Below are positions 1 through 52,932 of a stretch of 64,000 nucleotides of DNA, one piece after another; the first letter of the stretch is position 1, and each line of letters begins with the position of its first letter. The DNA comes from Utricularia gibba (taxonomy: Eukaryota > Plantae > Magnoliophyta). Below the pieces are notes generated by a model. That model ran no database searches and had not been told where the DNA came from. It was given only the letters and a program-made list of their open reading frames with translations. The stretch is from contig NEEC01000002.1 in assembly GCA_002189035.1 (NCBI GenBank), forward strand, positions 5,642,001 to 5,706,000, in the 5' to 3' direction. The position numbers and the translations under genes were made by a program.

Positions 1-539
1 TTCCCCAAGATCCAACAAGTAGCAAAAAGAGCAAAAGTTTGTACTGAGAAAAGAAATAGGTTTGAAAAGGAGCGCCAAAGTTGTAAGAAAAACAGATCAA
101 CTTACAGAAACACTACCCAAGAATGGGGTTCCTGGAAACACACGACTCATGTAGCAACAAATAAAAGTAAAAGCAAATATAGCGCTGTTCATAGTCAAGA
201 GCAACTGCGAAGAAATGCAAAAATCAAAGCAAAATACGTGAGACATTTTTTAGTTCTTCCTAAATCAAATAATTGTTCTGAAAGGTGAGAAAGATGAGTG
301 ATTGTCTTCACTTTATAACTTAATTTGACGCAAAAACAATTGAAATTCTTCCCCAGCGTCTCGTTCCATCAAACATCGTCTGTTGGTAGGATAATGTTAC
401 ATCCAATACAAAAGAAGTTCATATGGCTTTAGAACAAATGAGCTTACATTTGCTGATTAATTAGAACGAATCAAAGAATGTATGAGACAAAGGCTCTTCA
501 CTTGAGAGCTCAAAAAAGAAAAAAATGGATTTCAGTTCC

Positions 540-1842
540 TCAAGAGAAGGCAGTTGGTAGGGCTGTGCAGTTGAGAGCCGCCAGCGTTGGTTGAATGAGG
601 CTTTGTTCGATCCGGACCGCGATCTCCTGCGTAAAGTGTATGCCGTCCCAAAACATATGATGCTCGGGATTCGAGCACGCGGGCACCCCCGCAGTCCCAC
701 AGAACCTGTTGCTGCTATAGTTGTATCTGCCTCCGATCCCGCAACAAGTTTGCAGGGCAGTGTCCGCATGGCCTTCTGCAATCAGTCGCAAGTGAATATG
801 TTAATTCTTTCCAATAAGAATCTCTTTCTGTAATAGTTGTAATAAGGGCTCATGGACTTGCCTTGATTCAGTCTGTCGAGAACTTGTATGAAGCCCTCGT
901 CGAAGGCCCCGTAGATGAGGGTGACGTTGGGGAACTCCTGGCCCAACCTGTTGATGGCTTGGCGCAGATAGTTGTTTTTCAAAGTGATCAGCCTGTTCAC
1001 GCTGCTGAGGCATCCCAAACGATCATACGCCGTGGGATCGTTGGAGGGCAGAGCGTTCAGGATGTACGGGAAGCATCCAAGGGGAGCGCTGCCCGGAATG
1101 ACGATGAGCCTGGCACCCATTCTGATGAGCTCCTGCAAGTCAGGCGGTGGTGTTAGCATCAACAAATGCAACTTGCAGGCATGATTCGAGCAAAGAAAAT
1201 GGCTTTATGTACCCTTGTGGTCTTGATTTGTTCCCTTGTGATGGGGCCGATGAAAGACTGCGCTTCCTGAAGGGTCCTCCCTTCCATGAGGGCGTACCCG
1301 ATGTCGTTCGCTTCGAGGTCTCCCAGCAGCACCAGCGAGTTGGCTAGTCGATCCGCGATGCACTCAGATGAAGATCCGCAGACAGATTGCAGATGGGTTC
1401 TGAACCATTCGAGTTGGGCGTCGAGGGAAACTGCGTAAGGTGGAATGGTGATGCCTCTCCGGGAGAAGAAGCCGGGATCCATCACCGGACTTCTGGCAAC
1501 CGAAAAGATGACGCCGTTGCTGGAGTTGGACCTCTCCGATAGGTACGGTACGACTTCCGGGAATCCGAAGTCGAAGGCTGCGAAGTCGAAATCTACGAGA
1601 CCATCGGACCACCGCCCGTTGGGGCTGCCTGGATATGTGCGGCCGTAGGGCGGACGTGTGGCCGGAAGCGATGGTCCCCAGGGTTGCACCAGGACGGAGT
1701 TTCCGACGTCAGTGGCGCCGTCGCCGAAATGGTAAAGATAGGGAAATGGGCACACGGGATTACGATTACTCTGTGAGGAGACAAGACCAGAAACCATAGC
1801 AATAACAGCACCCAGGAGCAAGAGCCGAGACATGGAACCCAT
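540..1842 (-). CDS. GDSL esterase/lipase-like protein, copy 1 (378 aa, signal peptide, block I Ser replaced by Gly)
   Basis: Exons 1213-1842, 862-1132 and 540-775 splice in frame (1137 nt). Motifs FGDGATDVGN, GRWSDG, ANDI, PLGCFP, CCGIGG and WDGIH. The second intron is GC-AG. Confidence 0.9.
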
Positions 1843-2595
1843 GTTTTGTTGTTGTTGTTGTTCTTCTTCTTCTTCTTCAAGCTGAATGATCCACTGGCTG
1901 CCCGGCGTCTGTGAATTTATAGGAATCTTAGGAATCTGGGAACGGAAAGCGTCCACTTCTTGACGTGTTGCTGAATTCAAAGTACGACATGTCCCTGGCC
2001 GCGTGTGGGTCTCTCCTCCAAGATGGAGAAATGCCTAATCTGAACAATTCAATGCCCAGATGACACTTTCTTTTCCTCATGCTCGAAATTGGCGTAACTA
2101 GGAATTGTTCTCTTTTCATAATTTACTAAATTGATTCTTTTTAATATTTAAAAATTTTAATTTGTAACCATTGTGTATTAAAATAATAAATTAAGATTCT
2201 GTTATTAAATTCAAAATTTATTAAATTGATTCAATAACTATTTAATGATTAAATAAGAGATTAATTATAAATTAACAAGAAAAATTTTAAAAATGCGCTC
2301 ATTCTTTTCGTTTTTGATGTCTGATTTTACAGAAGCTGACCTTGACAAATCATTTTGACACACAATTTGAAAAATCGCGTTCAGTAAGTGTGAACGCCCG
2401 AAATCCCTTCCTGGTATGCTCCAGTGATGGACTGGACTTTATGCAATAAGGTGGGCCTGGAATGATGTGGCTCTTTTAAAATGGGCCTTGAAGGTACAGG
2501 CCCATAACTTGCTCTCGAATCGAATGTACACCACTTCGGGCCAGCAGTAATATCCTGCGGTATCTGGGATGTGACGGAGGGTTCGACCGATCTTG
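1843..2595. promoter_or_regulatory. Shared divergent promoter between the GDSL-like gene and the small membrane-protein gene
   Basis: About 750 bp separates the head-to-head ATGs. TATA-like CTATAAAT lies about 75 bp upstream of the GDSL ATG. Several TGGGCC/GGCCCA Site II-like motifs occur at about 2450-2505. Confidence 0.6.
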
Positions 2596-2967
2596 ATGAG
2601 CGACTCCCAGCGGAACTCCTCCTCTTCTGAGTCGGCCCAGAAAGCCTCTCCGCCGGACGTCTCGAGTGGCAGAGGGAGAGGAATTCCTCAGGGCCACCGT
2701 TATCCCAATCCGCCGGAAACGGTGAACCCTGACGCGGCGACTCTGAGAGAGCAGTGGCGATTCGCTATCAGACAGTACAGTAAATGGTATTCTCACGCGT
2801 GGGGCACTGCTATTATCGCCGGTCTCTCGTTCTTCGCCCTCGGTTGGGTGATCAAGGGTTCAAATCCTCTCCCGTCCCGCAAATCTGTTGATAGGGATCT
2901 TGGTGCTCCTTCTTCTTCCACCGGAGTTGGTGATGAACGTGAATCTCCAGTCAATCCATCCGTCTGA
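2596..2967 (+). CDS. Small single-exon protein with one predicted TM helix (unknown function), copy 1
   Basis: 123-aa ORF with core NPDAATLREQWRFAIRQYSKWYSHAWGTAIIAGLSFFALGWVIKGSNPLPS. The frame is kept in the diverged third copy (in-frame 6-nt indel). Confidence 0.8.
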   Translation: MSDSQRNSSSSESAQKASPPDVSSGRGRGIPQGHRYPNPPETVNPDAATLREQWRFAIRQYSKWYSHAWGTAIIAGLSFFALGWVIKGSNPLPSRKSVDRDLGAPSSSTGVGDERESPVNPSV

Positions 2968-3255
2968 TCTACGGGGCTCTTCTTGAAATACCCTGGTAAA
3001 ACTGACCAAGCGATTTGCTTCGTACCTTTACCAGACCCATGTTTCAGTTATGTGAGTGCTGCATCGTACTTTCAGATAATCTGGTTCTGTATTCTTCAGG
3101 AATTCTAAGAAGCTTCTTCTTTTCTTAGTGAACTTTGAGATGCATGGATGCCGTTGGCACACCCCAACACTCCCAAAGTTGTGCTCCTTCCCCAGGCATA
3201 TCAACACCATCAAGTCCAGCTCTCCACATTTGCCTGGTCCATCCCGTCTCCTATT

Positions 3256-5165
3256 TGTTGGAAGCCTTCCTCAGCTGGAGAACCACAAGGGTCAATGTAG
3301 CTCTGAGGAAATAGATATGGGTGCAAGTCTGATGCGCTCAAGAACTAAAGAACTCAGCTACAGAAAAATTCTGATCATCTTCAGGCTTTCTTATGTTTTT
3401 GGGCCTTTAGTGGGCCTGCAGACATAATTCTTGCAAGAATTATGGGACATATTTAAATTGTATCAAAAACCCTAGTTAGTGAGAGGAGCTTTTTTGGCAA
3501 AACATGTCTGCCGTTCTTGTTCTCTCATTTTCCCATTTCATTTTCAAAATTAGATTTGAACACAAAACTCTTCATGGTATCCGAGCGATCGTTCCTGCGT
3601 GTACCTGTAAATCCACATCTTAAGTGATGTCGTTCAGTGATCAGAAAAACGCTCCAGTGATTCTTGTCTTCTCTGGCGAGAACTATCATAGATGGGTTAG
3701 GAAAATAACACCTTACCTCAAGTGCAAGAAGCACTGGACAGTGATTTCCAAGGAGGTAAGTGAACCTCACCTGTCTGAAAATCCTACAGCAGCTGAACTC
3801 AAAAAGTTAGAAACTTTTGAGGAAAATAAGTATGCAGCCATCACAGCCCTACATGCCGCACTCACCGAAGAGGTATTCAACAAGATTGCTGACTGTCATA
3901 CGCCTAAGAAAATTTGGGACAAACTTCAAGAGCTCTATGGAGGTGAAGACAAAATGCAAAAATATACTCGTCGAAGTCTGATGGAAGAATTTGAGAGAAA
4001 CATTATGAAGGATTCAGAGAATCTAAAACAGTATTATGAAAGAACATCAAAGCTGGTTAATGAAATCCGAGTCTGGGAGAAGACCTCGCAGACTTCAAGG
4101 TTATAGAAAAGGCTATGATGAGCCTACCTGAAAGATTTGAAGCAAAATTGTGCACCATTGAGGTTGAAGAAAAGCTACGGAAAATTACGGGACATGAAGA
4201 ACCTATGAAATTTCCTGAGTTTATCGGTGAGTTGCAAGCCTCTGAAAAACAGATGCAAATTAGAGAAAACAGAATTACCTCTGACTTCAGTGCTGAATCT
4301 TCCATGTTCTCTAAGGCTCCCTATGCTTCAAAACCTGATGTCGGGCCCTCCAACAAGCACACTAAGTCAAATGGCTGTATTCATTGTGGAAAGAGTGGCC
4401 ATGCCTCAGAAAATTGTTGGCAGAAAAATGCTGTTCCCTGTATTCATTGCCAAAGGTTCTTTCACAAACCAAAGGTATGCTGGTATCATCCCGAAGCCCT
4501 ATGTGAGTATTGCAATGTCAAGGGACATGTGGAAAAGGTGTGCTCGATAAAGAAATCCAAAACTCCAATGATTGAGAAACCAAGGATAGAAATACTGACC
4601 AAGCTGCATCCTTTATGTATTTAGGAGAACCGATGATCTCCATACTAGATGCATGTGATGCTGAATACGCCCTGATGTCTAGCATGCACAATGCAAACAG
4701 AGGCTGGTATGTTGACAGTGGAGCTACCTATCATATTTGCACAGATCTGCATATGTTCTCTGAAATGAAGGGGAGTGCAAACAGAAATGTATGGGGATCT
4801 ACTGGCCATGCAACAAAAATTCTGGGCAAGGAACAATACATCTACCAGTGTCTGGCGGCTTTTTTATCATTAACGACGTGTGCTATGCCCCTCAGGTTGT
4901 ACAGAATCTATTAAGCTTGGGACAATTACAGACTCAAGGCTTTCAAGTGGAGCTACTAAATGAAGGCATCAGAATCCTTGATCCAATAAACAACAGATGT
5001 ACAATGGTCTTGAAGCTCAATAACAATCTGTATCAAATCAAGGTAGCAAATACTCATGAAGTGGCTTTTCTGTTTCTAAACAGTCCACTCTATGGCACAA
5101 ACGTTTCAGGCATCACAGCATCAAAAATCTAAAAACATTTCATGAGACAAACTTATCAAATCTAT
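3256..5165 (+). mobile_element. Ty1/Copia element A, 5' part (LTR, PBS, frameshifted gag-protease, truncated at GAG-pre-integrase)
   Basis: LTR TG..CA 3256-3574 preceded by CTATT. PBS TGGTATCCGAGC at 3575. Gag with CxxCxxxxHxxxxC knuckles, protease WYVDSGATYHI, then LWHKRF. Confidence 0.9.
3423..3444. repeat. Perfect 22-bp palindrome inside the Copia A LTR
   Basis: CATAATTCTTG|CAAGAATTATG is self-reverse-complementary. Confidence 0.95.
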
Positions 5166-7272
5166 TATTTTACACAATTATCCTATAAATATGTTGGATC
5201 ATGTGGGCTTTAGAAGATTTTGTTATTCTTTAAACCCTACATTTAATATGATATCTAGACATTCTCTTAGAAGGGATATCATGAATATGTATGTAAATTT
5301 CAAACCTAACTACTATTTGATGTTAAAAAAATGAACGATTGCATTGTTATTACTATTGACATGTTGACATCAAATAATAGTAAAAGAGGATTCATGGCCA
5401 TTATTGGATATTTTATTGATGATAGTTGGATTTTGAAGAGTTTTCTATTAATGTTCAATTAAAATGTTTGATTTTTAAAAGCATTATATTTGACTATCTT
5501 ATTTAGTTATTTATCTTCAACATATTTGTATATGTTCCTGCATCCGTGAAGTGATGTTTGATGTATTCCTTAACTCTTTTGTGAATTGGAATATAGACAA
5601 CAAGTTTTCCATAATTAAAATGAATAATTGTTCTGCAAATGATGTTGTAGTTGCATCATTATTGAACAAACTCTCAAGAAAAGACTTACTCCTTGATGGG
5701 AATATACTACATATGTGTTGTCATGATCATTCACTGAACTTAATTGTGTAGGATGGCTTAAATATGATTAAGGAATCAATACAATGCATCCGTGAAAGTG
5801 TATTGTTCTCGAAAGCTTCATCAAAAAGGGTAGAAAAATTGGATTATACTACAAATCAGTGTAAGATTACATTTAATCAAAAATTATCATCTGATTGTAG
5901 TACATAATGGAATGCTATATCTCTAATGCTTGAGACAATCATAAATTATAGAGAAGTGTTTTCACATCTTACATATATGGATAATATGTATAAATATGTG
6001 TTTAATGATGATGATTGAGATAAAGTAGCAAAGATTTGTGATAAATTCAAAGTTTTTTATAATGCAACATTTATGTTTTTGCATACTCTTCTATGCACTT
6101 CAAATGAGTTCTTTCCCATAGTTTGTGATATAAGGATTAAGTTTGATGAATAGAAAAGAAGTGAAAACTGTATGATTTCTACTTTGGTAACAATGATGCA
6201 TGAAAAATTTTCCAAATATTGGGATTCTTGTCACTTGATTTTAAGTGTTGTAGCACTTTTGGACTCTTGATATAATATGAGACTTGTTCAATTTTATTTT
6301 CAGAAAATTTATGATAGGATCACTGTTAATTTGAAAATTGAGAAAGTGCAGAAAAATTGTTAGAAGCTATTGAAATATTATACAATTTATATTTCAAGTT
6401 CTGTACATTCATTTACAAATAAAGAAAATTATGGTTTTAACTTCATAAATGGTAATATTGGTTCATCCTCTTACTCTACGTGTTGTTCAATGCTATTATA
6501 TAATAAATTTGTGACAAATGAATTTGTTATGTATAACTCTAATGAATTAGAAATTGATTGGTACTTGAAGGAGCTGATTTTGTCATAAATGGAAAATTTC
6601 AATGTTTTTGGATGGTGGTCCATTAATCGAGATTCATATCTTATATTAAAAAATATAGCTAATGATATTTTAGCTATTCCAATATCTACCGTGGCCTTTG
6701 AATTTGCATTTACTGTGGGTATGAACATTATTATCCTTTAACATAGTAGACTTAGTGAAGATATATTGGAAGCATTAATGTGTACTCGTGTATCGTTGTA
6801 GGATGAAATTGGAGATAAATATACTTATTTTTAATATTGTATTTTTTATTTACTAACCATTCTTTTTATGTGTATTAGGTGGGAAACAATACAAAAGTTT
6901 TGATGAAAATGATGATGGAGAGAATATTGACGATGAACTTGAAAAGGTTGGAGAATACCATTTTGAAAGTTTTATTAATTAATTAAATTATGATATTTTT
7001 GAGTAACTTTAGTTTTTAAATTACTTGTTTTCTTTGAAAAATTGATTTTACATACTAATATTTTTCTATTGAGTATTTGTTTTTATTATAGATTAATGTA
7101 AAATTTTGAAATGTGATTGTCAGATCTTAGGGTTTTACCTGAAACCAAGACAAAATTACGAAATCGTACAAGAACTGTAGTTTTAGTTTCAGTTCTAGAT
7201 TCTTAAAAATTTCTGTGGGTCAGCTATGGGTCCGGTAGGAACCAAACCAAAACCAGCCCACGTACAAGCTTA
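5165..7272 (+). mobile_element. 5'-truncated degenerate hAT (RICESLEEPER-like) transposase with 3' terminus
   Basis: Degenerate motifs NWNIDNK..MNNCSANDVVV, HMCCHDHSLNLIV, and the dimerisation domain FGWWSINRDSYLILKNIANDILAIPISTVAFE. Multiple stops. Candidate terminus ...CACGTACAAGCTTA at 7272. Confidence 0.85.
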
Positions 7273-7399
7273 ATCATAGTTTATTACGACTAAACGCATC
7301 TACATATAATGATTGGAATAATGGTTCTTGAAAGCAACCATATTGAAAATATAAAAAATAAATAAGTTCTACTAGCAATTAATTAAAATCATTCAAACC

Positions 7400-9400
7400 A
7401 GAAAATATCAAATTCATCAGACTATTCTACAAGTGGTAAATTCATTCCTCAATCTATCTTGTTGTGTATTCTTGTAAGATGCTATTGACCAATAATAGTG
7501 TGACAATATGTAGGTTCATGGTATAAGCTCTAACCTCGATAGGATACATAGGTATTAGAATCAAGAAGTCTGAAAACTTTTTCACTATTCATTTGCCACA
7601 AAACGTGCAATACATTGAGACTAATTATGAGATCATCAGCACTTACCTTCACCTTTTCAGCATAAGGACCATGCATAAGTCATTGCATTTTTTGTTTGAA
7701 TCTTTTTAAGGTACATTATCAACTTTCTTAGATTATAGGTTGCTCCAGTATTGTAAGTCATTTGCTTAAATATTTTGCTACCAAATTTTTTTGTTGAAGT
7801 TGGAAACATAATGATACAAATACCAAAAGTGAGCTAAATGACCTTCTTAAAATCCAACATAATTGCTCATAGCTATAAGCATGCCTCCAACTCTATCTGA
7901 GATTATGCTTGTCTTACCTCAACAAAAAAATTACTCATTCAGTAAATTTATAAACCAAAGATATGTATCTTTACTCTTCTCGTCAACAAATACATAGTCT
8001 AGCAATAAGATGTGACCATCTCGATCCTTAATAGTGGTTGCGAGCAACTTGTGATCATAATGTCCATATAAAAAAGTAGCATCTACTATAATAACAAGCT
8101 GGAAAAACGTGAATGCTTGAATAAAGAGACTATAGGTCCAAAAACATGATATGGATTTTATGGTTCCCTCCTACGACAATGAGAAAACAGTCCCATGAAA
8201 CCATTGTACTTGAATTAACCTACATGATTACCACAAATAATATAAGTAGTTTTTGCATTGATAATTCTCATGTTCCATAGACCAAATTAAAAGCAAGTTG
8301 AGCACAATACCATGCACGTTCATAAGTAATCTTCTTTTGATATTTTTCAAAAATACATTTTTGAGAATTTGCAATCTTCATCTCTACAACAAATAAAAGT
8401 TATTAAAAATTTAAATTATCTAAAGAAATTTAAAAAATATTTAAATTATACATCAATCTCTATGTGTAGTAATATGCATTAGTTCATATCCGATGAATAA
8501 ATCAAAAAAGTTGCGATGTTGAACTTCATCTATTATGCCATGCAAATATGTGAAACGTCATAGACCAATATTTGTCAAACTCTATCACGTGCAAATTGTA
8601 TAATCCTTAGGTGTCAATAACATTCAAAATCCATATTAGTATGAGCACATTTGCCCTTCCAGAATTCAAGCTAATTAATGGGAACAATGAATTTATATTT
8701 TCTTTTTATATGATAGTGGGCAACACAATATTGGGAATGGACTTTACTAGCAAATGCATTTTTCTTGTTCAACACATGTAACTTCTCATTGTACCACCTA
8801 TATTTACCACCATATTTAAGTTCTTTGAGCACAAAAGTGTTTACTAATTTTTTTTGGAAAGGGGGTACTCTTCCCTCACATAACATTCTAGAGAATTGTT
8901 GAGAGCAAGATTAAGGTAATCATATTGCACAAGGTGCCTCAATTATAGTCTATGGTGTTTCATCCTTGCAAATATTCTTTGAAGGGACTTTAAAATCATT
9001 ACTCGAGTCAATATCTCCACAACATCATCAAAGTTGACCACATCTTAAAAAAAATCAATGATAATATTTTCATACATTTACACTTAACATCTTTAAAATT
9101 ATCTTCTAAGGGGAATCCTTTAGTTACGTTCACACTAGGGTTGTTATCATGCCTTAAAGATAATGATAATTGAAGACTCGGAGATACATCTACAATACAA
9201 TTAATTATTATAAATATAAAAAATGGATAGTTCTTAACATATGTAATAAAACAAATACATGCATAATTGACATCCGGCATATTGTTGCAAGTCCATAAAG
9301 GAGTATGCAAACTTTCAACAAATTGATATTTTTGTTGTTCAATGTCATGTTACTTGAATATAGAGAATCGGATGACATTCCAAAAAATTGAAAAAATACA
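7400..9400 (-). mobile_element. Degenerate Mutator-like (MULE/MuDR) transposase
   Basis: Minus-strand fragments FASKVHSQYCVAHYHIKRKY, ITYERAWY and LVIIVDATFLYGHYDHKLLATTIKDRDGHILLLDYVFVDEKSKDTYLWF match MuDR/MULE transposase motifs. Boundaries approximate. Confidence 0.75.
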
Positions 9401-10187
9401 TATCTATTCTGAAATGATAAAAACAAATATCAATTTAAATAAAAGTAATTTATGGATAATAATAAAAATGTAATCAACAATTGTATAATTATTATAAAGT
9501 ATCAAAAAATTAAATAAAAAAATTACAAAAGGAAAAAATGATATTACTAAATTTTTATTCAATTCTAATTTTACTCAAACTTGAATATAAATGAAAGAAT
9601 TTATAAAGGTATAAGATATATATACATATAAGAAAATATGATTTGCATTAAGGTGACATCATTGATGGTGTGCTCCAATAAGTCACTGTTGTTGGTGGGG
9701 AGACTTATCTAAAACATCATCAATGATGGTGCAAGCCATTCTGAATATCCAAAGCACCACTAATAATAGTATATAATATTAATAATATAATATAATTATT
9801 TACCAATATTATGTAATTTAGTTTTTTTTCTGCATATCAGGTATGATATTTACATTAGTGCCATGCCATCTCATCTAAATGGTTTTCTCCCTTCTAGCCA
9901 TTATTCTAATAAGGTATTTTGTAGTTGGATATATAAATTTTATATCTAAATTTATATATACATATCAATATTTGATTAACTAGTATATATACTAATCTTA
10001 TATAATTACATCATTCACATACTCACTTGTTAAATATATGAATGTTATATAAAAATGGGAGAGGCTAACTATATGTATACTACTCCTAATTCAAACTTCT
10101 ATTCTTAAATATAAAACATTATATACGATTGAATATATACATATTTAATTATAATATACTTAAACATACTAATCATCTACTATTAAA

Positions 10188-10522
10188 CATGATCATGAAA
10201 ATGGTGACTCCACAACACGATCGCTGTTTAAATTTGAGTAATTTTATTGTTAGAAGCAGACTGATGCTAGAAAGGAGCTTGTCTTACATGGATGAAACCA
10301 TCAAAAATAAGTGTGCATAAGTTGTCTGAGATTCAAGGCCGTGTAAGTTCTTTGCAAGTTGTTTATACAAAGTCTAATACGCCAACTAGTCCAAACATTA
10401 CTCAAGAACCTACATGCTTGATCACCAGTCCAAAACACTACTCAAAATGCTAAACTTTTTTGTGAGTGGATCATGAAGTCTGCATCCTTTATTCTCTTCT
10501 GAATACAAGGCAGGGCTAATAG
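10188..10522 (-). other. Host flank downstream of Copia A, homologous to about 53163-53500
   Basis: Reverse complement aligns with 53163-53500 at roughly 85-90% by eye. It begins with the second TSD copy (CTATT, plus-strand AATAG 10518-10522). Confidence 0.85.
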
Positions 10523-10666
10523 TGAAGAGTTTTGTGTTCAAATCTAATTTTGAAAATGAAATGGGAAAATGAGAGAACAAGAACGGCAGACATGTTTTGC
10601 CAAAAAAGCTCCTCTCACTAACTAGGGTTTTTGATACAATTTAAATATGTCCCATAATTCTTGCAA
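10523..10666 (-). mobile_element. 3' half of the Copia A 3' LTR
   Basis: Matches LTR positions 3431-3574. On the minus strand it ends ..CTCTTCA followed by TSD CTATT. Confidence 0.9.
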
Positions 10667-11076
10667 TGACTTATGCATGGTCCTTATGCTGAAAAGGTGA
10701 AGGTAAGTGCTGATGATCTCATAATTAGTCTCAATGTATTGCACGTTTTGTGGCAAATGAATAGTGAAAAAGTTTTCAGACTTCTTGATTCTAATACCTA
10801 TGTATCCTATCGAGGTTAGAGCTTATACCATGAACCTACATATTGTCACACTATTATTGGTCAATAGCATCTTACAAGAATACACAACAAGATAGATTGA
10901 GGAATGAATTTACCACTTGTAGAATAGTCTGATGAATTTGATATTTTCTGGTTTGAATGATTTTAATTAATTGCTAGTAGAACTTATTTATTTTTTATAT
11001 TTTCAATATGGTTGCTTTCAAGAACCATTATTCCAATCATTATATGTAGATGCGTTTAGTCGTAATAAACTATGAT

Positions 11077-13184
11077 TAAGCTTGTACGTGGGCTGGTTTT
11101 GGTTTGGTTCCTACCGGACCCATAGCTGACCCACAGAAATTTTTAAGAATCTAGAACTGAAACTAAAACTACAGTTCTTGTACGATTTCGTAATTTTGTC
11201 TTGGTTTCAGGTAAAACCCTAAGATCTGACAATCACATTTCAAAATTTTACATTAATCTATAATAAAAACAAATACTCAATAGAAAAATATTAGTATGTA
11301 AAATCAATTTTTCAAAGAAAACAAGTAATTTAAAAACTAAAGTTACTCAAAAATATCATAATTTAATTAATTAATAAAACTTTCAAAATGGTATTCTCCA
11401 ACCTTTTCAAGTTCATCGTCAATATTCTCTCCATCATCATTTTCATCAAAACTTTTGTATTGTTTCCCACCTAATACACATAAAAAGAATGGTTAGTAAA
11501 TAAAAAATACAATATTAAAAATAAGTATATTTATCTCCAATTTCATCCTACAACGATACACGAGTACACATTAATGCTTCCAATATATCTTCACTAAGTC
11601 TACTATGTTAAAGGATAATAATGTTCATACCCACAGTAAATGCAAATTCAAAGGCCACGGTAGATATTGGAATAGCTAAAATATCATTAGCTATATTTTT
11701 TAATATAAGATATGAATCTCGATTAATGGACCACCATCCAAAAACATTGAAATTTTCCATTTATGACAAAATCAGCTCCTTCAAGTACCAATCAATTTCT
11801 AATTCATTAGAGTTATACATAACAAATTCATTTGTCACAAATTTATTATATAATAGCATTGAACAACACGTAGAGTAAGAGGATGAACCAATATTACCAT
11901 TTATGAAGTTAAAACCATAATTTTCTTTATTTGTAAATGAATGTACAGAACTTGAAATATAAATTGTATAATATTTCAATAGCTTCTAACAATTTTTCTG
12001 CACTTTCTCAATTTTCAAATTAACAGTGATCCTATCATAAATTTTCTGAAAATAAAATTGAACAAGTCTCATATTATATCAAGAGTCCAAAAGTGCTACA
12101 ACACTTAAAATCAAGTGACAAGAATCCCAATATTTGGAAAATTTTTCATGCATCATTGTTACCAAAGTAGAAATCATACAGTTTTCACTTCTTTTCTATT
12201 CATCAAACTTAATCCTTATATCACAAACTATGGGAAAGAACTCATTTGAAGTGCATAGAAGAGTATGCAAAAACATAAATGTTGCATTATAAAAAACTTT
12301 GAATTTATCACAAATCTTTGCTACTTTATCTCAATCATCATCATTAAACACATATTTATACATATTATCCATATATGTAAGATGTGAAAACACTTCTCTA
12401 TAATTTATGATTGTCTCAAGCATTAGAGATATAGCATTCCATTATGTACTACAATCAGATGATAATTTTTGATTAAATGTAATCTTACACTGATTTGTAG
12501 TATAATCCAATTTTTCTACCCTTTTTGATGAAGCTTTCGAGAACAATACACTTTCACGGATGCATTGTATTGATTCCTTAATCATATTTAAGCCATCCTA
12601 CACAATTAAGTTCAGTGAATGATCATGACAACACATATGTAGTATATTCCCATCAAGGAGTAAGTCTTTTCTTGAGAGTTTGTTCAATAATGATGCAACT
12701 ACAACATCATTTGCAGAACAATTATTCATTTTAATTATGGAAAACTTGTTGTCTATATTCCAATTCACAAAAGAGTTAAGGAATACATCAAACATCACTT
12801 CACGGATGCAGGAACATATACAAATATGTTGAAGATAAATAACTAAATAAGATAGTCAAATATAATGCTTTTAAAAATCAAACATTTTAATTGAACATTA
12901 ATAGAAAACTCTTCAAAATCCAACTATCATCAATAAAATATCCAATAATGGCCATGAATCCTCTTTTACTATTATTTGATGTCAACATGTCAATAGTAAT
13001 AACAATGCAATCGTTCATTTTTTTAACATCAAATAGTAGTTAGGTTTGAAATTTACATACATATTCATGATATCCCTTCTAAGAGAATGTCTAGATATCA
13101 TATTAAATGTAGGGTTTAAAGAATAACAAAATCTTCTAAAGCCCACATGATCCAACATATTTATAGGATAATTGTGTAAAATAA
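11077..13184 (-). mobile_element. hAT fragment, mirror copy
   Basis: Mirror of 5165-7272, with identical ORF fragments. Confidence 0.85.
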
Positions 13185-15094
13185 TAGATTTGATAAGTTT
13201 GTCTCATGAAATGTTTTTAGATTTTTGATGCTGTGATGCCTGAAACGTTTGTGCCATAGAGTGGACTGTTTAGAAACAGAAAAGCCACTTCATGAGTATT
13301 TGCTACCTTGATTTGATACAGATTGTTATTGAGCTTCAAGACCATTGTACATCTGTTGTTTATTGGATCAAGGATTCTGATGCCTTCATTTAGTAGCTCC
13401 ACTTGAAAGCCTTGAGTCTGTAATTGTCCCAAGCTTAATAGATTCTGTACAACCTGAGGGGCATAGCACACGTCGTTAATGATAAAAAAGCCGCCAGACA
13501 CTGGTAGATGTATTGTTCCCTTGCCCAGAATTTTTGTTGCATGGCCAGTAGATCCCCATACATTTCTGTTTGCACTCCCCTTCATTTCAGAGAACATATG
13601 CAGATCTGTGCAAATATGATAGGTAGCTCCACTGTCAACATACCAGCCTCTGTTTGCATTGTGCATGCTAGACATCAGGGCGTATTCAGCATCACATGCA
13701 TCTAGTATGGAGATCATCGGTTCTCCTAAATACATAAAGGATGCAGCTTGGTCAGTATTTCTATCCTTGGTTTCTCAATCATTGGAGTTTTGGATTTCTT
13801 TATCGAGCACACCTTTTCCACATGTCCCTTGACATTGCAATACTCACATAGGGCTTCGGGATGATACCAGCATACCTTTGGTTTGTGAAAGAACCTTTGG
13901 CAATGAATACAGGGAACAGCATTTTTCTGCCAACAATTTTCTGAGGCATGGCCACTCTTTCCACAATGAATACAGCCATTTGACTTAGTGTGCTTGTTGG
14001 AGGGCCCGACATCAGGTTTTGAAGCATAGGGAGCCTTAGAGAACATGGAAGATTCAGCACTGAAGTCAGAGGTAATTCTGTTTTCTCTAATTTGCATCTG
14101 TTTTTCAGAGGCTTGCAACTCACCGATAAACTCAGGAAATTTCATAGGTTCTTCATGTCCCGTAATTTTCCGTAGCTTTTCTTCAACCTCAATGGTGCAC
14201 AATTTTGCTTCAAATCTTTCAGGTAGGCTCATCATAGCCTTTTCTATAACCTTGAAGTCTGCGAGGTCTTCTCCCAGACTCGGATTTCATTAACCAGCTT
14301 TGATGTTCTTTCATAATACTGTTTTAGATTCTCTGAATCCTTCATAATGTTTCTCTCAAATTCTTCCATCAGACTTCGACGAGTATATTTTTGCATTTTG
14401 TCTTCACCTCCATAGAGCTCTTGAAGTTTGTCCCAAATTTTCTTAGGCGTATGACAGTCAGCAATCTTGTTGAATACCTCTTCGGTGAGTGCGGCATGTA
14501 GGGCTGTGATGGCTGCATACTTATTTTCCTCAAAAGTTTCTAACTTTTTGAGTTCAGCTGCTGTAGGATTTTCAGACAGGTGAGGTTCACTTACCTCCTT
14601 GGAAATCACTGTCCAGTGCTTCTTGCACTTGAGGTAAGGTGTTATTTTCCTAACCCATCTATGATAGTTCTCGCCAGAGAAGACAAGAATCACTGGAGCG
14701 TTTTTCTGATCACTGAACGACATCACTTAAGATGTGGATTTACAGGTACACGCAGGAACGATCGCTCGGATACCATGAAGAGTTTTGTGTTCAAATCTAA
14801 TTTTGAAAATGAAATGGGAAAATGAGAGAACAAGAACGGCAGACATGTTTTGCCAAAAAAGCTCCTCTCACTAACTAGGGTTTTTGATACAATTTAAATA
14901 TGTCCCATAATTCTTGCAAGAATTATGTCTGCAGGCCCACTAAAGGCCCAAAAACATAAGAAAGCCTGAAGATGATCAGAATTTTTCTGTAGCTGAGTTC
15001 TTTAGTTCTTGAGCGCATCAGACTTGCACCCATATCTATTTCCTCAGAGCTACATTGACCCTTGTGGTTCTCCAGCTGAGGAAGGCTTCCAACA
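13185..15094 (-). mobile_element. Copia A 5' part, mirror copy (5' LTR 14776-15094)
   Basis: Mirror of 3256-5165. The protease ORF 13217..13735 is continuous here. Confidence 0.9.
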
Positions 15095-15382
15095 AATAGG
15101 AGACGGGATGGACCAGGCAAATGTGGAGAGCTGGACTTGATGGTGTTGATATGCCTGGGGAAGGAGCACAACTTTGGGAGTGTTGGGGTGTGCCAACGGC
15201 ATCCATGCATCTCAAAGTTCACTAAGAAAAGAAGAAGCTTCTTAGAATTCCTGAAGAATACAGAACCAGATTATCTGAAAGTACGATGCAGCACTCACAT
15301 AACTGAAACATGGGTCTGGTAAAGGTACGAAGCAAATCGCTTGGTCAGTTTTACCAGGGTATTTCAAGAAGAGCCCCGTAGA

Positions 15383-15754
15383 TCAGACGGATGGATTGAC
15401 TGGAGATTCACGTTCATCACCAACTCCGGTGGAAGAAGAAGGAGCACCAAGATCCCTATCAACAGATTTGCGGGACGGGAGAGGATTTGAACCCTTGATC
15501 ACCCAACCGAGGGCGAAGAACGAGAGACCGGCGATAATAGCAGTGCCCCACGCGTGAGAATACCATTTACTGTACTGTCTGATAGCGAATCGCCACTGCT
15601 CTCTCAGAGTCGCCGCGTCAGGGTTCACCGTTTCCGGCGGATTGGGATAACGGTGGCCCTGAGGAATTCCTCTCCCTCTGCCACTCGAGACGTCCGGCGG
15701 AGAGGCTTTCTGGGCCGACTCAGAAGAGGAGGAGTTCCGCTGGGAGTCGCTCAT
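15383..15754 (-). CDS. Small TM protein, copy 2
   Basis: Translation identical to 2596..2967. Confidence 0.8.
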   Translation of the reverse strand: MSDSQRNSSSSESAQKASPPDVSSGRGRGIPQGHRYPNPPETVNPDAATLREQWRFAIRQYSKWYSHAWGTAIIAGLSFFALGWVIKGSNPLPSRKSVDRDLGAPSSSTGVGDERESPVNPSV

Positions 15755-16507
15755 CAAGATCGGTCGAACCCTCCGTCACATCCCAGATACCGCAGGATAT
15801 TACTGCTGGCCCGAAGTGGTGTACATTCGATTCGAGAGCAAGTTATGGGCCTGTACCTTCAAGGCCCATTTTAAAAGAGCCACATCATTCCAGGCCCACC
15901 TTATTGCATAAAGTCCAGTCCATCACTGGAGCATACCAGGAAGGGATTTCGGGCGTTCACACTTACTGAACGCGATTTTTCAAATTGTGTGTCAAAATGA
16001 TTTGTCAAGGTCAGCTTCTGTAAAATCAGACATCAAAAACGAAAAGAATGAGCGCATTTTTAAAATTTTTCTTGTTAATTTATAATTAATCTCTTATTTA
16101 ATCATTAAATAGTTATTGAATCAATTTAATAAATTTTGAATTTAATAACAGAATCTTAATTTATTATTTTAATACACAATGGTTACAAATTAAAATTTTT
16201 AAATATTAAAAAGAATCAATTTAGTAAATTATGAAAAGAGAACAATTCCTAGTTACGCCAATTTCGAGCATGAGGAAAAGAAAGTGTCATCTGGGCATTG
16301 AATTGTTCAGATTAGGCATTTCTCCATCTTGGAGGAGAGACCCACACGCGGCCAGGGACATGTCGTACTTTGAATTCAGCAACACGTCAAGAAGTGGACG
16401 CTTTCCGTTCCCAGATTCCTAAGATTCCTATAAATTCACAGACGCCGGGCAGCCAGTGGATCATTCAGCTTGAAGAAGAAGAAGAAGAACAACAACAACA
16501 ACAAAAC

Positions 16508-17810
16508 ATGGGTTCCATGTCTCGGCTCTTGCTCCTGGGTGCTGTTATTGCTATGGTTTCTGGTCTTGTCTCCTCACAGAGTAATCGTAATCCCGTGTGC
16601 CCATTTCCCTATCTTTACCATTTCGGCGACGGCGCCACTGACGTCGGAAACTCCGTCCTGGTGCAACCCTGGGGACCATCGCTTCCGGCCACACGTCCGC
16701 CCTACGGCCGCACATATCCAGGCAGCCCCAACGGGCGGTGGTCCGATGGTCTCGTAGATTTCGACTTCGCAGCCTTCGACTTCGGATTCCCGGAAGTCGT
16801 ACCGTACCTATCGGAGAGGTCCAACTCCAGCAACGGCGTCATCTTTTCGGTTGCCAGAAGTCCGGTGATGGATCCCGGCTTCTTCTCCCGGAGAGGCATC
16901 ACCATTCCACCTTACGCAGTTTCCCTCGACGCCCAACTCGAATGGTTCAGAACCCATCTGCAATCTGTCTGCGGATCTTCATCTGAGTGCATCGCGGATC
17001 GACTAGCCAACTCGCTGGTGCTGCTGGGAGACCTCGAAGCGAACGACATCGGGTACGCCCTCATGGAAGGGAGGACCCTTCAGGAAGCGCAGTCTTTCAT
17101 CGGCCCCATCACAAGGGAACAAATCAAGACCACAAGGGTACATAAAGCCATTTTCTTTGCTCGAATCATGCCTGCAAGTTGCATTTGTTGATGCTAACAC
17201 CACCGCCTGACTTGCAGGAGCTCATCAGAATGGGTGCCAGGCTCATCGTCATTCCGGGCAGCGCTCCCCTTGGATGCTTCCCGTACATCCTGAACGCTCT
17301 GCCCTCCAACGATCCCACGGCGTATGATCGTTTGGGATGCCTCAGCAGCGTGAACAGGCTGATCACTTTGAAAAACAACTATCTGCGCCAAGCCATCAAC
17401 AGGTTGGGCCAGGAGTTCCCCAACGTCACCCTCATCTACGGGGCCTTCGACGAGGGCTTCATACAAGTTCTCGACAGACTGAATCAAGGCAAGTCCATGA
17501 GCCCTTATTACAACTATTACAGAAAGAGATTCTTATTGGAAAGAATTAACATATTCACTTGCGACTGATTGCAGAAGGCCATGCGGACACTGCCCTGCAA
17601 ACTTGTTGCGGGATCGGAGGCAGATACAACTATAGCAGCAACAGGTTCTGTGGGACTGCGGGGGTGCCCGCGTGCTCGAATCCCGAGCATCATATGTTTT
17701 GGGACGGCATACACTTTACGCAGGAGATCGCGGTCCGGATCGAACAAAGCCTCATTCAACCAACGCTGGCGGCTCTCAACTGCACAGCCCTACCAACTGC
17801 CTTCTCTTGA
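16508..17810 (+). CDS. GDSL esterase/lipase-like protein, copy 2 (Ser-to-Gly in block I)
   Basis: Exons 16508-17137, 17218-17488 and 17575-17810. GT-AG then GC-AG introns. 378 aa. Confidence 0.9.
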
Positions 17811-18855
17811 GGAACTGAAATCCATTTTTTTCTTTTTTGAGCTCTCAAGTGAAGAGCCTTTGTCTCATACATTCTTTGATTCGTTCTAATTAATCAGCAA
17901 ATGTAAGCTCATTTGTTCTAAAGCCATATGAACTTCTTTTGTATTGGATGTAACATTATCCTACCAACAGACGATGTTTGATGGAACGAGACGCTGGGGA
18001 AGAATTTCAATTGTTTTTGCGTCAAATTAAGTTATAAAGTGAAGACAATCACTCATCTTTCTCACCTTTCAGAACAATTATTTGATTTAGGAAGAACTAA
18101 AAAATGTCTCACGTATTTTGCTTTGATTTTTGCATTTCTTCGCAGTTGCTCTTGACTATGAACAGCGCTATATTTGCTTTTACTTTTATTTGTTGCTACA
18201 TGAGTCGTGTGTTTCCAGGAACCCCATTCTTGGGTAGTGTTTCTGTAAGTTGATCTGTTTTTCTTACAACTTTGGCGCTCCTTTTCAAACCTATTTCTTT
18301 TCTCAGTACAAACTTTTGCTCTTTTTGCTACTTGTTGGATCTTGGGGAATGAAGAGAATAAGCAGTCAATCACCCTTGAGTGAAATGAGAACTAAATGGC
18401 CGTAGGTCAAGGAGAAGCTTCACGTGTGGAGACACTCCCACCCTAGAAGTCTGCTGCAATTTATCTTGGTTTTACTTTCAACTTCTTGAGCTTGTTAACT
18501 TCCCTGTTGTTGAAATTTGCAGTTTCTGTTCTGATCGTAACTCACTGCAATACTCAGCTAGGCAAGATTTTACCCAACAACAGAGTGTCTGGAAGATGGT
18601 GCACTGATAAAGTATGAACAGAGCAAATGAAACAGAGTGAAGGCAGATGGTACTTAGATTCTCAGAAAAAACTTGTCCAAATGGATACAACGGAACAGAA
18701 CTTGAATAAACTAATGTGCAACAACTAAAAATATGGCTTGCGCAGCAACAAGAATCTCAGGGAAGTGGCAGAGAAGTGGGATGCTGACTCCCATGTGTGT
18801 GGTCAGCTTGGCTTGGCTGTCAGGAAAAACAGCCATTTCCTTGCCAGTATGGTTG

Positions 18856-42700: not shown

Positions 42701-43393
42701 ACATTGAGGAAATTTATTCTGAGATCCAATATCAGAAAGTCGATAGAGACCATTCTTCACATATCCCTACGCAATCACGACTTCACTGTTCCGGTCCTGC
42801 AAAACACAACCATCGGCATCGAAGATAGCACGTAAATTGTTGTGTTTAACTATCTTGTAGACAGAGGCCAAATTCACAAGAAATGTAGGGACTCGAAGAA
42901 TATAAGAGAACTGAAGGCTAGAAGTGAAGCGGTAGTCCCCAATTCCGTCAACCCTAAGAGCAAGATTATTTGGCAAAAAAACCTTTTGACTTGAACTGAA
43001 TGTTTTAAAGTTGCGTAGAGCAATTTGAGGGCCACAGATGTGGGAAGTGGCTCTAGAATCCAGGATCCAGTCTTGCTTAGGTTAACGAGAAGCATTAGAA
43101 GTCATACTTGAGAAGGCTCCTGCACCCATTTCTGCCTCAACCTCCCTGCCTCCAGAATTATCCTAGGTAGTGTTGAAGTGATGTTGAACCAAGAAAGAAT
43201 GGCAGAGTGTATGAACGAGATTTAAGAGTTCTTGTGGTAGGGATCCTCCACCCACATCTAAAGGTGTCGCCTGTGTGCTAGAGCTAGCCATATTGGCTTG
43301 ATGATCACCATTTTTATGCTTTGAATTCTTCAGACGCCCATGTAATTGTCCACTTCAGTGGGAAGTGCACAACCCACAATATCAAGGAGCATC
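39785..43393 (-). mobile_element. Ty1/Copia element C, 5'-truncated and degenerate
   Basis: Short 3' LTR about 39785-39928 (TG..CA, TATAAATA) after PPT GAGGGGGGA. RH, RT (KQLDVNNAFLH) and integrase (TDNGSEF, QNGHVERKHRH) fragments. No 5' LTR found. Confidence 0.85.
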
Positions 43394-45062
43394 TTAGAAC
43401 TCAAAGAGCACACACGTCTCCCTCCCTCCCATAGTTCGAATTCTAAGATGCTCCTTGATATTGTGGGCTGTGCACTCCCCACTGAAGTGGAAAAATCTTG
43501 CTCCTAATCGGTGATCATCCAGCAACAAAGAATTGTTTTCTCGCTCATTTTTTGAGTCTCTAATCATAGTTAAAAATTCTAGTCTTTCCTCCATGGCTGT
43601 TGGAGTGAGCTCTTGATGATACCAATGTTCCAAGATGTCCCCTACTTCCCATTCCCAAGCTTCACTCAGTGTAGCTTGTTTATGCAAAACTACCCCATAG
43701 AGTTCTGGGAATCTATCTCTAAGTGTCCCCTCTAAATCAACCCAGGAGTCTTCCTACACGCGGACCTGTGAACCATCCCCCCATATGTGTTTAAACCACC
43801 TATTAATGTCAATGGTTGGCCATTCTTTTTTTATAGTTGCTGAAAGAGATGCTATCCTCCCCCATGTAGTAGTACGTACTCTAGAGCCCAATTTGCAGTT
43901 GAGTCCACCTCCTCAACCATAGATGGAAAGCACCACCCGCCTCCATAGTTCATCCCCCCATTCTTAAGCCGCCACCACCACTTGATGAGCAGTGAAATAT
44001 TCGAATCTAGAAACGGTGCAATGTTTAGACCCCCTGCCTCATATGAATTAGTGATTTGACCCCATGCCACACAGGTGATCTTCTAGTCTGAGATGTTCGA
44101 GCCGTTCCAGAAAAACTTTATTCTGATTTGTTCAATCCGTTTGAGTACCAATCATGGTACCTGAAACAAGGAGAAATGGTATACTGGCAGACTACCCAAA
44201 ATCGACTTACATAGTGTCAAGCGTCCACCCTTAGAAAGAAAGCGGCTACTCCAGTTCTATAATCGTTTTTGAACTTTTTGCACTAAGGGAGACCAAATCA
44301 AAACCCTTTGCATGCTTTCTCTTATGGGTAGCCCGAGGTAGTGGAATGGTGTAGAGCCCCCAGTACAGCCAAGTAGCATTGCAACCCTTATCACCTCAGC
44401 GGCTCCCACGTTAACACCTATCAACTTTGTTTTGTGGTAGTTCACCTGTAGCCCTGAGAGATGCATGCTCATATCCACATCAGCCACTTCATACTAAACC
44501 CCATGGATCTCATCATGTCTAATAGGAAGGGCCACTTCACTCGATCATAAGCTTTTTCAAAAACGATTTTCAACGGACCCAATTTGTTCTTCTTTTGCTT
44601 TGCTTCATTGACAATCTCGTTAGCTATCAAAACACTATCCACTATTTGTCTCCCTTGGATAAACCCAGATTGTTCTGAAGAAATAAGATATGGTACCACC
44701 TCTTTCAGTCTTCTTGCTAAAATCTTTACGATCACCTTGTATAGGGAGGTCACTAGATGGATTGGTTGATAGTCACTGAAAGCTATTGAATTTTGTTTTT
44801 TGGGTATCAAACTTATAAAGGTAGAATTGAAGCCTCTTCCCAGGTGTCCCGTTCTTTCAAAGCGATGAATCCATTCACTTACCTCATTGCCTATAATGTC
44901 CCAGTATTTTAAAAGGAATTCTGTAGTGAATCCATCTGGTTTTGGGCATTTGTCCCAGCCACACTCTTTAACGGCATCTAATATTTCTTCATCGGAGATT
45001 GGAGTATCCAATAAAAGACCTTGATCTGCTCTTAATCTTTTGATCCTGCTATCATTAATCAT
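43394..45062 (-). mobile_element. L1-type LINE reverse transcriptase fragment
   Basis: PKPDGFT..KYWDII, FISLIPK, QPIHLVTSLYKVIVKILARRL, QSGFIQGRQIVD, FEKAYDRV and PFHYLGLPI. Confidence 0.9.
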
Positions 45063-48900: not shown

Positions 48901-49912
48901 TCTTTCCAACTGTATTTGATATAGGTTGTTTAATCTCATCGCTGATGTTGACTTGGAATTTTTTGAATTAGTAATTTTAACTCCTTTCTTTTTTTAGTTC
49001 CACCTTAAAGTCATGTTTTTGCAGTTGACCAAGGCTCAATAGATTTTACATGACTTGAGGAGCATAGGATACATTTTCAATTTTCAGAAATCTCCCTACC
49101 ATCGGTAAGTGAATGATACCTCTTTCCAATATTTTAGAGGCATGGTCAATGGAGCTCCATACTTTTCCTTTTGGTAGTCTTGATAATTTAATGAAAAATC
49201 TCAATTCTATACAAATGTGACTTATAGCACCACTATCAACATACCATTTTTTTTGTTTGATCTGATTCACATGTCATCAATGCAAACTCAGTATCACAAG
49301 CATCTAAAAATGATATTTCTGCATCATTTGTATATGATAGCATAGTTGTTTGTTTCCCATTCTTCAAATGCTCTAATTCTCCATTTTTATGTCTAGTCAG
49401 GCATACCTTTTCCACATGTCCCTTCTCTGACTTGTGAAAGGGTTTGAAGCTGCTCCAATAGTTCTTAGACGTGTGATTCATTTTGTTGCAATAAAGGCAC
49501 CCCTCTAACCTTGAATTTGAGATATTTGTGGAATTGTCCTTTGCCTTTCTTTTTTGGTCAATGGCTTCTTTTGAGTATAGAATAGATTCACTTTTGAGAG
49601 TTGTAGAATTGCACTACTCTCTGATTGGTATCCTTTTTTCTAATGATTGTAGCTCACTTATAGACTTTGAGAAGGTCATTTTTTCCTCATTGCCAAACAC
49701 CTTTCTCATTTTCTCTTCAAGAATGCAATAGGCGGCAAAAGCATTGTTTCTTATCTTACAACACAATAAGTCGGGCTTGAGTGTTCAAGCATATATGTGC
49801 ATGTGATAGAAAAAAGGGTTTTAATACAAAATGAAAATTTTCCCTGAACTTTCTTCAGCTCCCTTTGTCTTCAATTCACTAACGTCCCATACCTCATGAG
49901 CAACTATCAACA
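45951..49912 (-). mobile_element. Ty1/Copia element B, degenerate and internally deleted
   Basis: 3' LTR 45951-46193 after PPT GGGGGAG. 5' LTR remnant about 49728-49912. TSD TTCAG/TTTAG (45946-45950, 49913-49917). Protease WYVDSGAISHI, integrase, RT and RH fragments. Confidence 0.88.
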
Positions 49913-52808: not shown

Positions 52809-52932
52809 AATCAAGGGTTCAAATCCTCTCCCGTCCCACAAATCTGGTGATAGGGATGTGGGTGCCCCTTCTTCTTCCACCGGAGTTGGTGATGAACATG
52901 TGTCTCCAGACAAGGTCAATCCATCCCGCTGA
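52555..52932 (+). CDS. Small TM protein, copy 3 (different C-terminus)
   Basis: 125 aa. Identical N-terminal two-thirds; ends HKSGDRDVGAP..DEHVSPDKVNPSR. Confidence 0.8.
   Translation: MSDSQRNSSSSESAQKASPPDVSSGRGRGIPQGHRYPNPPETVNPDAATLREQWRFAIRQYSKWYSHAWGTAIIAGLSFFALGWVIKGSNPLPSHKSGDRDVGAPSSSTGVGDEHVSPDKVNPSR

Follow-up and report, generated by a model that had tools for sequence, protein, structure and literature searches.

The window analysed here (64,000 nt of Utricularia gibba DNA, containing no N) begins with a large, gene-bearing inverted repeat which, judged from the assembly through which its arms are known, has about an even chance of being a real and very recent fold-back inverted duplication, made in vivo during the repair of a chromosome break. 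Fold-back inverted duplication is an event type already known. A repeat search and an arm-versus-arm blastn comparison agree that positions 1-7687 (left arm) and 10662-18349 (right arm) are reverse complements of one another over 7687/7688 nt, with no mismatches and one gap, and perfect complementarity over 7.7 kb excludes chance as the source of the arms. The sole difference between them is a 1-bp indel in a run of G, with GG at 4830-4831 in the left arm against CCC (that is, GGG) at 13518-13520 in the right. The original prediction of a very young duplication with near-identical arms of at least 7.7 kb is borne out: the arms carry no substitutions at all, so they are young or freshly made, and their length is a minimum only, since the left arm runs into base 1 of the window and stops nowhere before it. 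The right arm runs on into the remaining window.

Between the arms lies an AT-rich spacer of 2974 nt (7688-10661), the presumed loop of the fold-back. It had been described as unique, and within the window it is indeed single-copy: its similarity to other parts of the window is limited to 335 nt, shared with an older paralogous copy of the flank (P3, described below), and to 139 nt of LTR, and a self-comparison within the window found no mirror similarity inside the spacer. Pfam scans of the spacer ORFs gave no domain matches. Two inverted copies with single-copy sequence between them are the arrangement expected of a fold-back.

Each arm is composed of two modules. In the left arm the outer module, from position 1 to about 5150, consists of flanking DNA with two genes and the 5’ half of a Copia retrotransposon, and the inner module, from about 5150 to 7687, consists of a hAT relic and about 420 nt more. 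The two genes, which had been predicted to lie in the arms, are both present in mirrored copies. One, at 540-1842 on the minus strand (mirror copy 16508-17810, plus strand), encodes a GDSL-like lipase by separate scans of its exon ORFs, with the motif GDGA in place of GDS. The other, at 2596-2967 on the plus strand (mirror copy 15383-15754, minus strand), encodes a small conserved plant transmembrane protein of 123 aa with 280 homologues across flowering plants, of which those from Lamiales score best at about 70% identity. A near-identical third gene-bearing copy, P3, lies about 31 kb from the arms at 49911-53500, oriented like the left arm and lacking Copia. P3 differs from the arms at one position in 2849 nt and then diverges by about 10%, from which we read the locus as recombination-active. 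As a reference for the state before insertion, P3 has an empty site at about 53165 and is collinear on either side of it with 10188-10522 and with 15096-18398.

The retrotransposon has the features of a Ty1/copia element: TG...CA LTRs, a 5-bp target site duplication (TSD), a tRNA-Met primer site, and Retrotran_gag_2, Pol_BBD and gag_pre-integrs matches. In the right arm its complete 5’ LTR of 319 nt occupies 14776-15094 on the minus strand (mirror copy 3256-3574, plus strand), and just inside it, at 14764-14775, is an initiator tRNA-Met primer-binding site that agrees with the usual one at 11 of 12 bases. Three ORFs at 13217-14726 on the minus strand (mirror 3624-5132, plus strand) cover gag and the start of pol, with Retrotran_gag_2, a zinc-knuckle region and Pol_BBD; in the left arm the third of these ORFs is split by the G-run indel at 4830-4831. 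The element is broken, lacking integrase, RT and RNase H. Its 3’ LTR (10523-10666, minus strand) is truncated to the first 144 of 319 nt, all identical to the 5’ LTR, and the remaining 175 nt and the 3’ part of Copia are absent from the 64-kb window. The TSD AATAG is found at 10518-10522 and at 15095-15099 (mirror copy in the left arm, 3251-3255). With AATAG on both sides of the element and P3 collinear across the empty site, the right end of the spacer must have lain next to Copia ancestrally, and its predicted composition of half an LTR, a TSD and host flank is therefore correct (10523-10666, 10518-10522 and 10188-10522, respectively; the last are the 335 nt homologous to the P3 flank).

Copia ends internally at a second join, at 13194-13203 (mirror at about 5146-5155 in the left arm), where its pol, cut in the GAG-pre-integrase domain, meets a 5’-truncated hAT transposase on the same strand. 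This transposase is a degenerate relic full of stop codons at 11611-13203 (minus strand), with a hAT-like RNase-H fold at 12082-12195 and a dimerisation domain at 11611-11760; the hAT 3’ terminus is probably near 11090, as far as the sequence indicates, and a search around 10.6-13.4 kb found no convincing pair of terminal inverted repeats. This join of Copia to hAT, at about 13.2 kb, is older than, or simultaneous with, the fold-back join.

The evidence that bears most directly on the origin of the repeat comes from its inner boundaries. The original prediction had two rearrangement junctions, at 7687/7688 and at 10661/10662. We find one novel join only, at 10662-10666 (plus strand), where the match to the LTR extends as far as 10666 and the mirror match begins at 10662, leaving an overlap of five nt, TGCAA; the geometry suggests that 7687/7688 is most simply native sequence. 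TGCAA is complementary to TTGCA at 7683-7687 (plus strand), where the left arm gives way to the spacer, so that the novel junction carries the inverted microhomology expected of a fold-back. An overlap of five nt is expected by chance at about 4^-5, and if arm boundary and LTR break were unrelated, the chance of finding them within five nt of one another would be about 1 in 1000; the coincidence is automatic if 10662-10666 is the fold-back junction. Moreover, the complete LTR contains a perfect 22-nt palindrome at 14906-14927 (mirror copy 3423-3444), with a 9-bp stem and a 4-nt loop, TGCA, which folds as DNA at -5.7 kcal/mol (z -4.5). The homologous loop of the 3’ LTR is 10662-10665, and it is there that the break sits.

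Taken together, these observations are consistent with the following sequence of events. Copia inserted between the spacer's right-hand end and the gene-bearing flank, as attested by the 5-bp TSD and the P3 empty site, and the join of Copia pol to hAT, as found in both arms, sets the 5’ half of Copia, together with both genes, beside the hAT relic and in left-arm orientation; it may have arisen through an earlier inversion or through a first template switch in the same event. The need for this extra join, which weighs against the reading, means that the history comprises either two events or one compound event. The 3’ LTR would then have broken in the loop of its own palindrome, a hairpin-forming site, with loss of the DNA beyond; the resected end, TGCAA, may have annealed to the TTGCA that lies 2974 nt upstream on that strand, and DNA synthesis from there would have copied the chromosome back on itself. 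The outcome would be two mirror-image copies of the arm, with 2974 nt left as a single-copy loop, with both the GDSL-like gene and the small membrane-protein gene doubled, and with two LTR promoters facing each other, from which a putative read-through RNA would form a hairpin whose stem exceeds 4 kb. We favour such a fold-back because the arms are perfect and the spacer unique, because LTR end and mirror start (10666/10662) fall within five nt of one another, at the loop that a perfect 22-nt palindrome forms, because a 2974-bp spacer and 5-bp microhomology fit published human cases, and because the locus appears recombination-active. At the same time, a simple fold-back gives a dicentric or acentric chromosome and requires a second, stabilising event; this counts against a real fold-back here, where any trace of stabilisation would lie off the window.

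Two variants of the rearrangement were considered and rejected. A fold-back in the opposite direction, with a break left of 7688 and the right arm as the original, leaves the 0-5-nt coincidence of arm boundary and LTR truncation unexplained, and an inversion between the right arm and P3 as the source of the left arm would not bring new neighbours together on the side of Copia. Metagenome contigs scanned by exact match gave no hit to either the 7687/7688 boundary or the junction at 10662, an uninformative result, since the collection probably does not include this plant. Protein word searches with the ORF spanning 7687/7688 and with the 172-aa Copia ORF split by the indel in the left arm, meant to retrieve the version of either arm from short-read assemblies, gave no match, not even to themselves, and are hence uninformative.

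The most serious competing explanation, which we regard as possible though on the unlikely side, is that the arm is single in the genome and that a chimeric read, or a read from a rare somatic fold-back molecule, extended a contig end, after which polishing with multi-mapped reads equalised the arms. The left arm reaches base 1 of the window and, if that is a contig end, the picture is the one that a single odd long read there would produce; arm plus spacer (10.66 kb) come to about the length of a typical long read, the mean subread of the PacBio/HGAP assembly of bladderwort, presumably the same as the present one, being 10.4 kb (PMC5793159). Also pointing this way is the G-run indel, which is the only difference between the arms and breaks an ORF in the left one. 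A 1-bp homopolymer indel is a common consensus error. On the other hand, the loop consists of 2974 nt of real sequence whereas the usual read artefacts have no spacer, five nt of inverted microhomology in a hairpin loop are an in-vivo signature, and the novel junction lies well inside the sequence, 10.6 kb from the window start, where a single chimeric read would need to prevail over many true reads. Read-correcting assemblers, moreover, would usually break up a read at a junction that finds no support in other reads. A related reading, to which we give rather little weight, supposes that only the inner 2.5 kb is duplicated: an inverted copy of the hAT-relic block (about 5150-7687) patched the Copia break, and the outer 5.1 kb was mis-extended by the assembler. 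It would derive both joins, the one at 10662-10666 and the one at about 13.2 kb, from one viable repair without an unstable chromosome, and it suits both the mosaic arms, whose inner block adjoins the spacer on the left and whose outer block is collinear with P3 on the right, and the left arm touching the window start. Overlap-based assemblers, however, place each read once and favour longer true overlaps; a 2.5-kb repeat is far below long-read size, which makes assembler fold-through appear unlikely, and at about 5146-5155 the contig does carry the mirror image of the Copia|hAT join.

The other two explanations seem to us very improbable, and equally so. An old palindrome kept identical by gene conversion, like those of sex chromosomes, would suit a locus where P3, with its single difference in 2849 nt followed by about 10% divergence, speaks for active conversion; against it, diverged mirror similarity is absent just inside the arm boundaries and across the spacer (the outer boundary being off the window), and the arms end on the inside at an abrupt junction with microhomology, within a young LTR whose copies are identical at 144 of 144 nt. 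Alternative transposition of hAT elements such as Ac/Ds and Tam3 is known to generate inverted duplications, and a hAT transposase relic does lie in the inner part of both arms. Yet that relic is 5’-truncated and rich in stop codons, a search around 10.6-13.4 kb turned up no convincing terminal inverted repeats for it, and the arm boundary falls about 420 nt past the probable hAT 3’ end rather than at a terminus.

If both arms are real, the fold-back would provide a natural plant example, at nucleotide resolution, of a pathway known from human disease and tumours, with the break point pinned to a hairpin-forming palindrome within an LTR, and it would illustrate how young retrotransposons can seed gene-bearing inverted duplications that are potentially hairpin-RNA loci. 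If the repeat is an artefact, it is a warning that a sensible, kb-sized spacer alone does not prove an inverted repeat at a sequence start.

An inverted repeat of gene and transposon sequence, as present here, is the structural basis of hairpin-RNA loci of the Mu killer and PAI type. In Arabidopsis PAI1-PAI4 and at the soybean I locus, gene-bearing inverted repeats silence their paralogues. The present locus resembles them in having host genes within a perfect inverted repeat, and P3, 31 kb away, would be a possible target in trans; an epigenetic effect as at PAI or the soybean I locus is suggested here by analogy only. Mu killer of maize (PMC3440606) likewise duplicates a transposon segment in inverted form, and the present repeat could similarly give rise to a putative hairpin RNA, of about 4 kb, if transcribed from outside or from the element; unlike in Mu killer, the arms here carry two host genes, the Copia frame is already interrupted, and the locus is known from sequence alone. 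The two 5’ LTRs, one per arm, are identical and oriented inward toward each other. We consider it doubtful that all parts of the fullest reading hold jointly, namely a fixed natural fold-back in a plant, a break by hairpin cleavage at the LTR palindrome, and a resulting ‘Copia killer’. In such a locus, identical LTR promoters would converge over a perfect stem longer than 4 kb and yield hairpin RNA, which would be directed against the Copia family, the hAT relic and the two host genes that have a third copy in P3.

Fold-back artefacts at the contig ends of long-read assemblies normally have a loop of zero or adapter size and no microhomology at a meaningful site. The present repeat shares with them its perfect arms, one arm cut at the sequence start and a homopolymer indel as the sole difference; it differs in having its junction in a hairpin loop and, as had been predicted, in having no zero- or adapter-length loop at its symmetry centre. 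The kb-scale loop of real and interpretable genome sequence, partly collinear with P3, counts against the common missed-adapter or strand-follow-on artefact. Hairpin-capped breaks at palindromes lead to palindromic chromosomes and breakage-fusion-bridge cycles in yeast, Tetrahymena and tumours. As in those systems, the break here coincides with a perfect palindrome's loop, and what results is a large inverted duplication; unlike the classical case, where the palindrome is the centre and there is almost no spacer, the broken end appears to have paired 3 kb away, so the palindrome would be the break site and not the turning point. The closest likeness is to the human non-recurrent fold-back inverted duplications (Hermetz et al. 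2014, PMC3907307). The present case differs from these in being in a plant, in having its break in a hairpin-forming LTR palindrome and in having its outer duplication end beyond the window. At the same time, the single-copy spacers in the human duplications measure 766-70,466 bp with a median of 3,428, comparable to the 2974 bp found here, the inverted microhomology at their sole novel junctions is 2-8 bp long (simulations gave 0-4 bp), comparable to the 5 bp found here, and in both the second spacer boundary is native.

A repeat search of the window bore out the inverted repeat of the original prediction: two pairs of segments, 1–4831 with 13519–18349 and 4815–7687 with 10662–13534, are each 100% complementary and make up a left arm (1–7687) and a right arm (10662–18349). 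The sole difference between the arms is a G-run indel, GG at 4830–4831 vs GGG (plus-strand CCC) at 13518–13520, and it interrupts an ORF of the left arm; the window contains no Ns. The predicted arm length of at least 7.7 kb also holds, as a minimum, because the left arm ends at base 1 where the window begins. Between the arms lies a 2974-nt spacer (7688–10661), and comparing the spacer with itself revealed no mirror similarity inside it. No Pfam-recognisable ORF was found in its left 2.5 kb (7688–10187), which may be a degenerate transposon. This stretch is 28% G+C and has no counterpart beside P3, the older paralogous copy of the gene block. An exact-match scan of metagenome contigs, a collection that probably does not include this plant, returned no match to either arm/spacer boundary, and a protein word search with the boundary-spanning ORF and the indel-split ORF returned none either, self-matches being likewise absent.

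Two host genes are carried in each arm. The outer one encodes a GDSL-like lipase (540–1842, minus strand; mirrored at 16508–17810, plus), with a Pfam Lipase_GDSL match in one exon ORF when the exon ORFs were scanned one by one. In place of the family motif GDS(L) this gene has GDGA, and the nucleophile serine is therefore absent from all three of its copies. The other is small, has a single exon and encodes a transmembrane protein conserved in plants (2596–2967, plus; mirrored at 15383–15754, minus) with 280 homologues, the best of them from Lamiales at ~70% identity. All 123 aa of it are included exactly in the database protein P0001 (179 aa, encoded on a contig of 1291 nt), which has W at two points where the window is expected to have stop codons. 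P0001 looks like the product of a genomic short-read contig on which gene calling used an alternative genetic code, so the protein collection seems to include independent short contigs of this plant.

P3 (49911–53500), in which the gene block occurs for a third time, lies 31 kb away in the same orientation as the left arm. Between P3 49960–52808 and the arms (1–2849 and 15501–18349) only one of 2849 positions differs (left-arm 1860), and from left-arm position 2850 onwards, within the 3’ end of the small gene, divergence rises abruptly to ~10%, a pattern that fits a recent conversion patch with a sharp tract edge.

A minus-strand Ty1/copia element is also present in the right arm. Its 5’ LTR (14776–15094; 319 nt, TG...CA; other copy at 3256–3574, plus) is followed by a tRNA-Met primer site (14764–14775) and coding ORFs (14726–13217, minus) for gag (Retrotran_gag_2), a zinc knuckle and Pol_BBD; pol runs on in another frame into a GAG-pre-integrase domain and ends inside it near 13194 (profile positions 19–47 of 67). 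Of the 3’ LTR only the first 144 nt are left (10523–10666), 100% identical to the 5’ LTR, and an identical 5-bp target duplication, AATAG, is found at 10518–10522 and 15095–15099. P3 lacks the element, the equivalent of 15096 running directly into that of 10522–10188; this empty site and the two AATAG copies show that Copia insertion took place between the gene block and the right end of the spacer. The LTR half, target duplication and host flank predicted there were thus correctly recognised, given the 144-nt remnant, the AATAG pair and the collinearity with P3. Since the gag region (13726–14726, minus) is split into ORFs of 160 and 169 aa ahead of the Pol_BBD ORF despite identity between the two LTR pieces, the element was already defective or non-autonomous at the time of insertion. 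Within its LTR is a perfect 22-nt palindrome whose loop is TGCA (14906–14927 and 3423–3444; 3’ LTR equivalent 10653–10674); as single-stranded DNA it is predicted to form a stem of 9 bp closed by a loop of 4 nt (-5.7 kcal/mol, z -4.5). If common to other copies of this Copia family, of which one element is seen here, the palindrome may provide recurrent break sites. Self-comparison of the window also showed an imperfect palindrome of ~146 nt at 43346–43494 (80% self-complementary), perhaps representing a MITE or hairpin locus.

Inward of the Copia element the right arm continues into a 5’-truncated hAT transposase with many stop codons (~13203–11611, minus; hAT-like RNase-H fold 12082–12195, dimerisation domain 11611–11760), whose 3’ end is probably near 11090, and then into ~420 nt of further sequence reaching 10667. 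Each arm is therefore a mosaic: the left side of the spacer runs on into the inner block, made up of the hAT relic and 420 nt, and the outer block, with the genes and the 5’ half of Copia, is ancestral beside the right side of the spacer, as shown by P3 and the target duplication. The blocks join near 13194–13203 (mirrored at ~5146–5155), where both elements are cut internally on the same strand. A simple insertion or deletion cannot have produced this join, which must stem either from an earlier inversion that broke Copia pol and hAT once each, or from a first microhomology-mediated template switch that was followed, within one repair event, by self-templated fold-back; the uncut partners of the join are absent from the window.

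At the inner edge of the right arm, LTR identity stops at 10666 and mirror identity starts at 10662, leaving a 5-nt overlap, TGCAA. Its first four bases (10662–10665) are the loop of the LTR palindrome, and the whole of it is the reverse complement of TTGCA at 7683–7687, the final bases of the left arm. Such a layout is expected of a fold-back, in which the 3’ end at 10666 would pair with 7683–7687 on its own strand and be extended leftward along the left arm, writing the right arm from 10667 onward, and the break seeding the duplication would have lain in the hairpin loop. The original prediction had counted two junctions, 7687/7688 and 10661/10662; under fold-back, 10662–10666 would be the sole new join of this step and 7687/7688 ordinary contiguous sequence. 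Treating 7687/7688 as a new join unrelated to the LTR truncation needs a coincidence within 5 nt, expected about once in 1000 cases by chance (~4^-5 for the overlap alone), and was rejected as the main explanation.

The mirror structure of the predicted young duplication is present in the sequence, and the interpretation put on it is supported in part. Its most likely origin, to which we give about even confidence, is an authentic and very recent fold-back that began with a break in the LTR palindrome, with artefact as the main rival. A contig-end or rare-molecule artefact, which we consider less likely, would account for a left arm that extends to base 1 and for arm differences limited to one short, ORF-breaking homopolymer indel. 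Arm plus spacer also amount to about one long read (mean subread 10.4 kb in the bladderwort PacBio/HGAP assembly, PMC5793159, which we infer to be the present one), and a plain fold-back product would be dicentric or acentric, needing a second event outside the window. Against this, the loop is kb-sized genomic sequence, the microhomology is located in a hairpin loop, and a single chimeric read would have had many true ones to compete with at the join, which is 10.6 kb from the start of the sequence; recent conversion at the locus, seen in P3, also favours a real structure. A mixed explanation limits the true repeat to the inner 2.5 kb and treats the left arm’s outer 5.1 kb as mis-extension; we rate it lower, since a 2.5-kb stretch is normally spanned by reads.

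If the fold-back duplication is real, it has doubled two genes of which a near-identical third copy was already present. The two identical Copia 5’ LTRs (3256–3574, plus; 14776–15094, minus) face inward, and read-through might yield a hairpin RNA with a ~4.1-kb stem (3575–7687 vs 10662–14775) and a loop of 3 kb. The arrangement is reminiscent of Mu killer (PMC3440606) and, by analogy, of the PAI and soybean I loci, and all three parallels are hypothetical. Fold-back inverted duplications are already known, and the present structure would be a further example. At 21 sequenced junctions of human inverted duplications, Hermetz et al. (PMC3907307) found a single-copy spacer in all (766–70,466 bp, median 3,428) and 2–8 bp of inverted microhomology in 13, vs 0–4 bp in 1000 simulations, and inferred that a break was followed by resection, then intrastrand pairing, then replication. 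The spacer of 2974 bp and the 5-bp microhomology seen here match that pattern closely, and the proposed break goes beyond the human cases in sitting in a hairpin loop.
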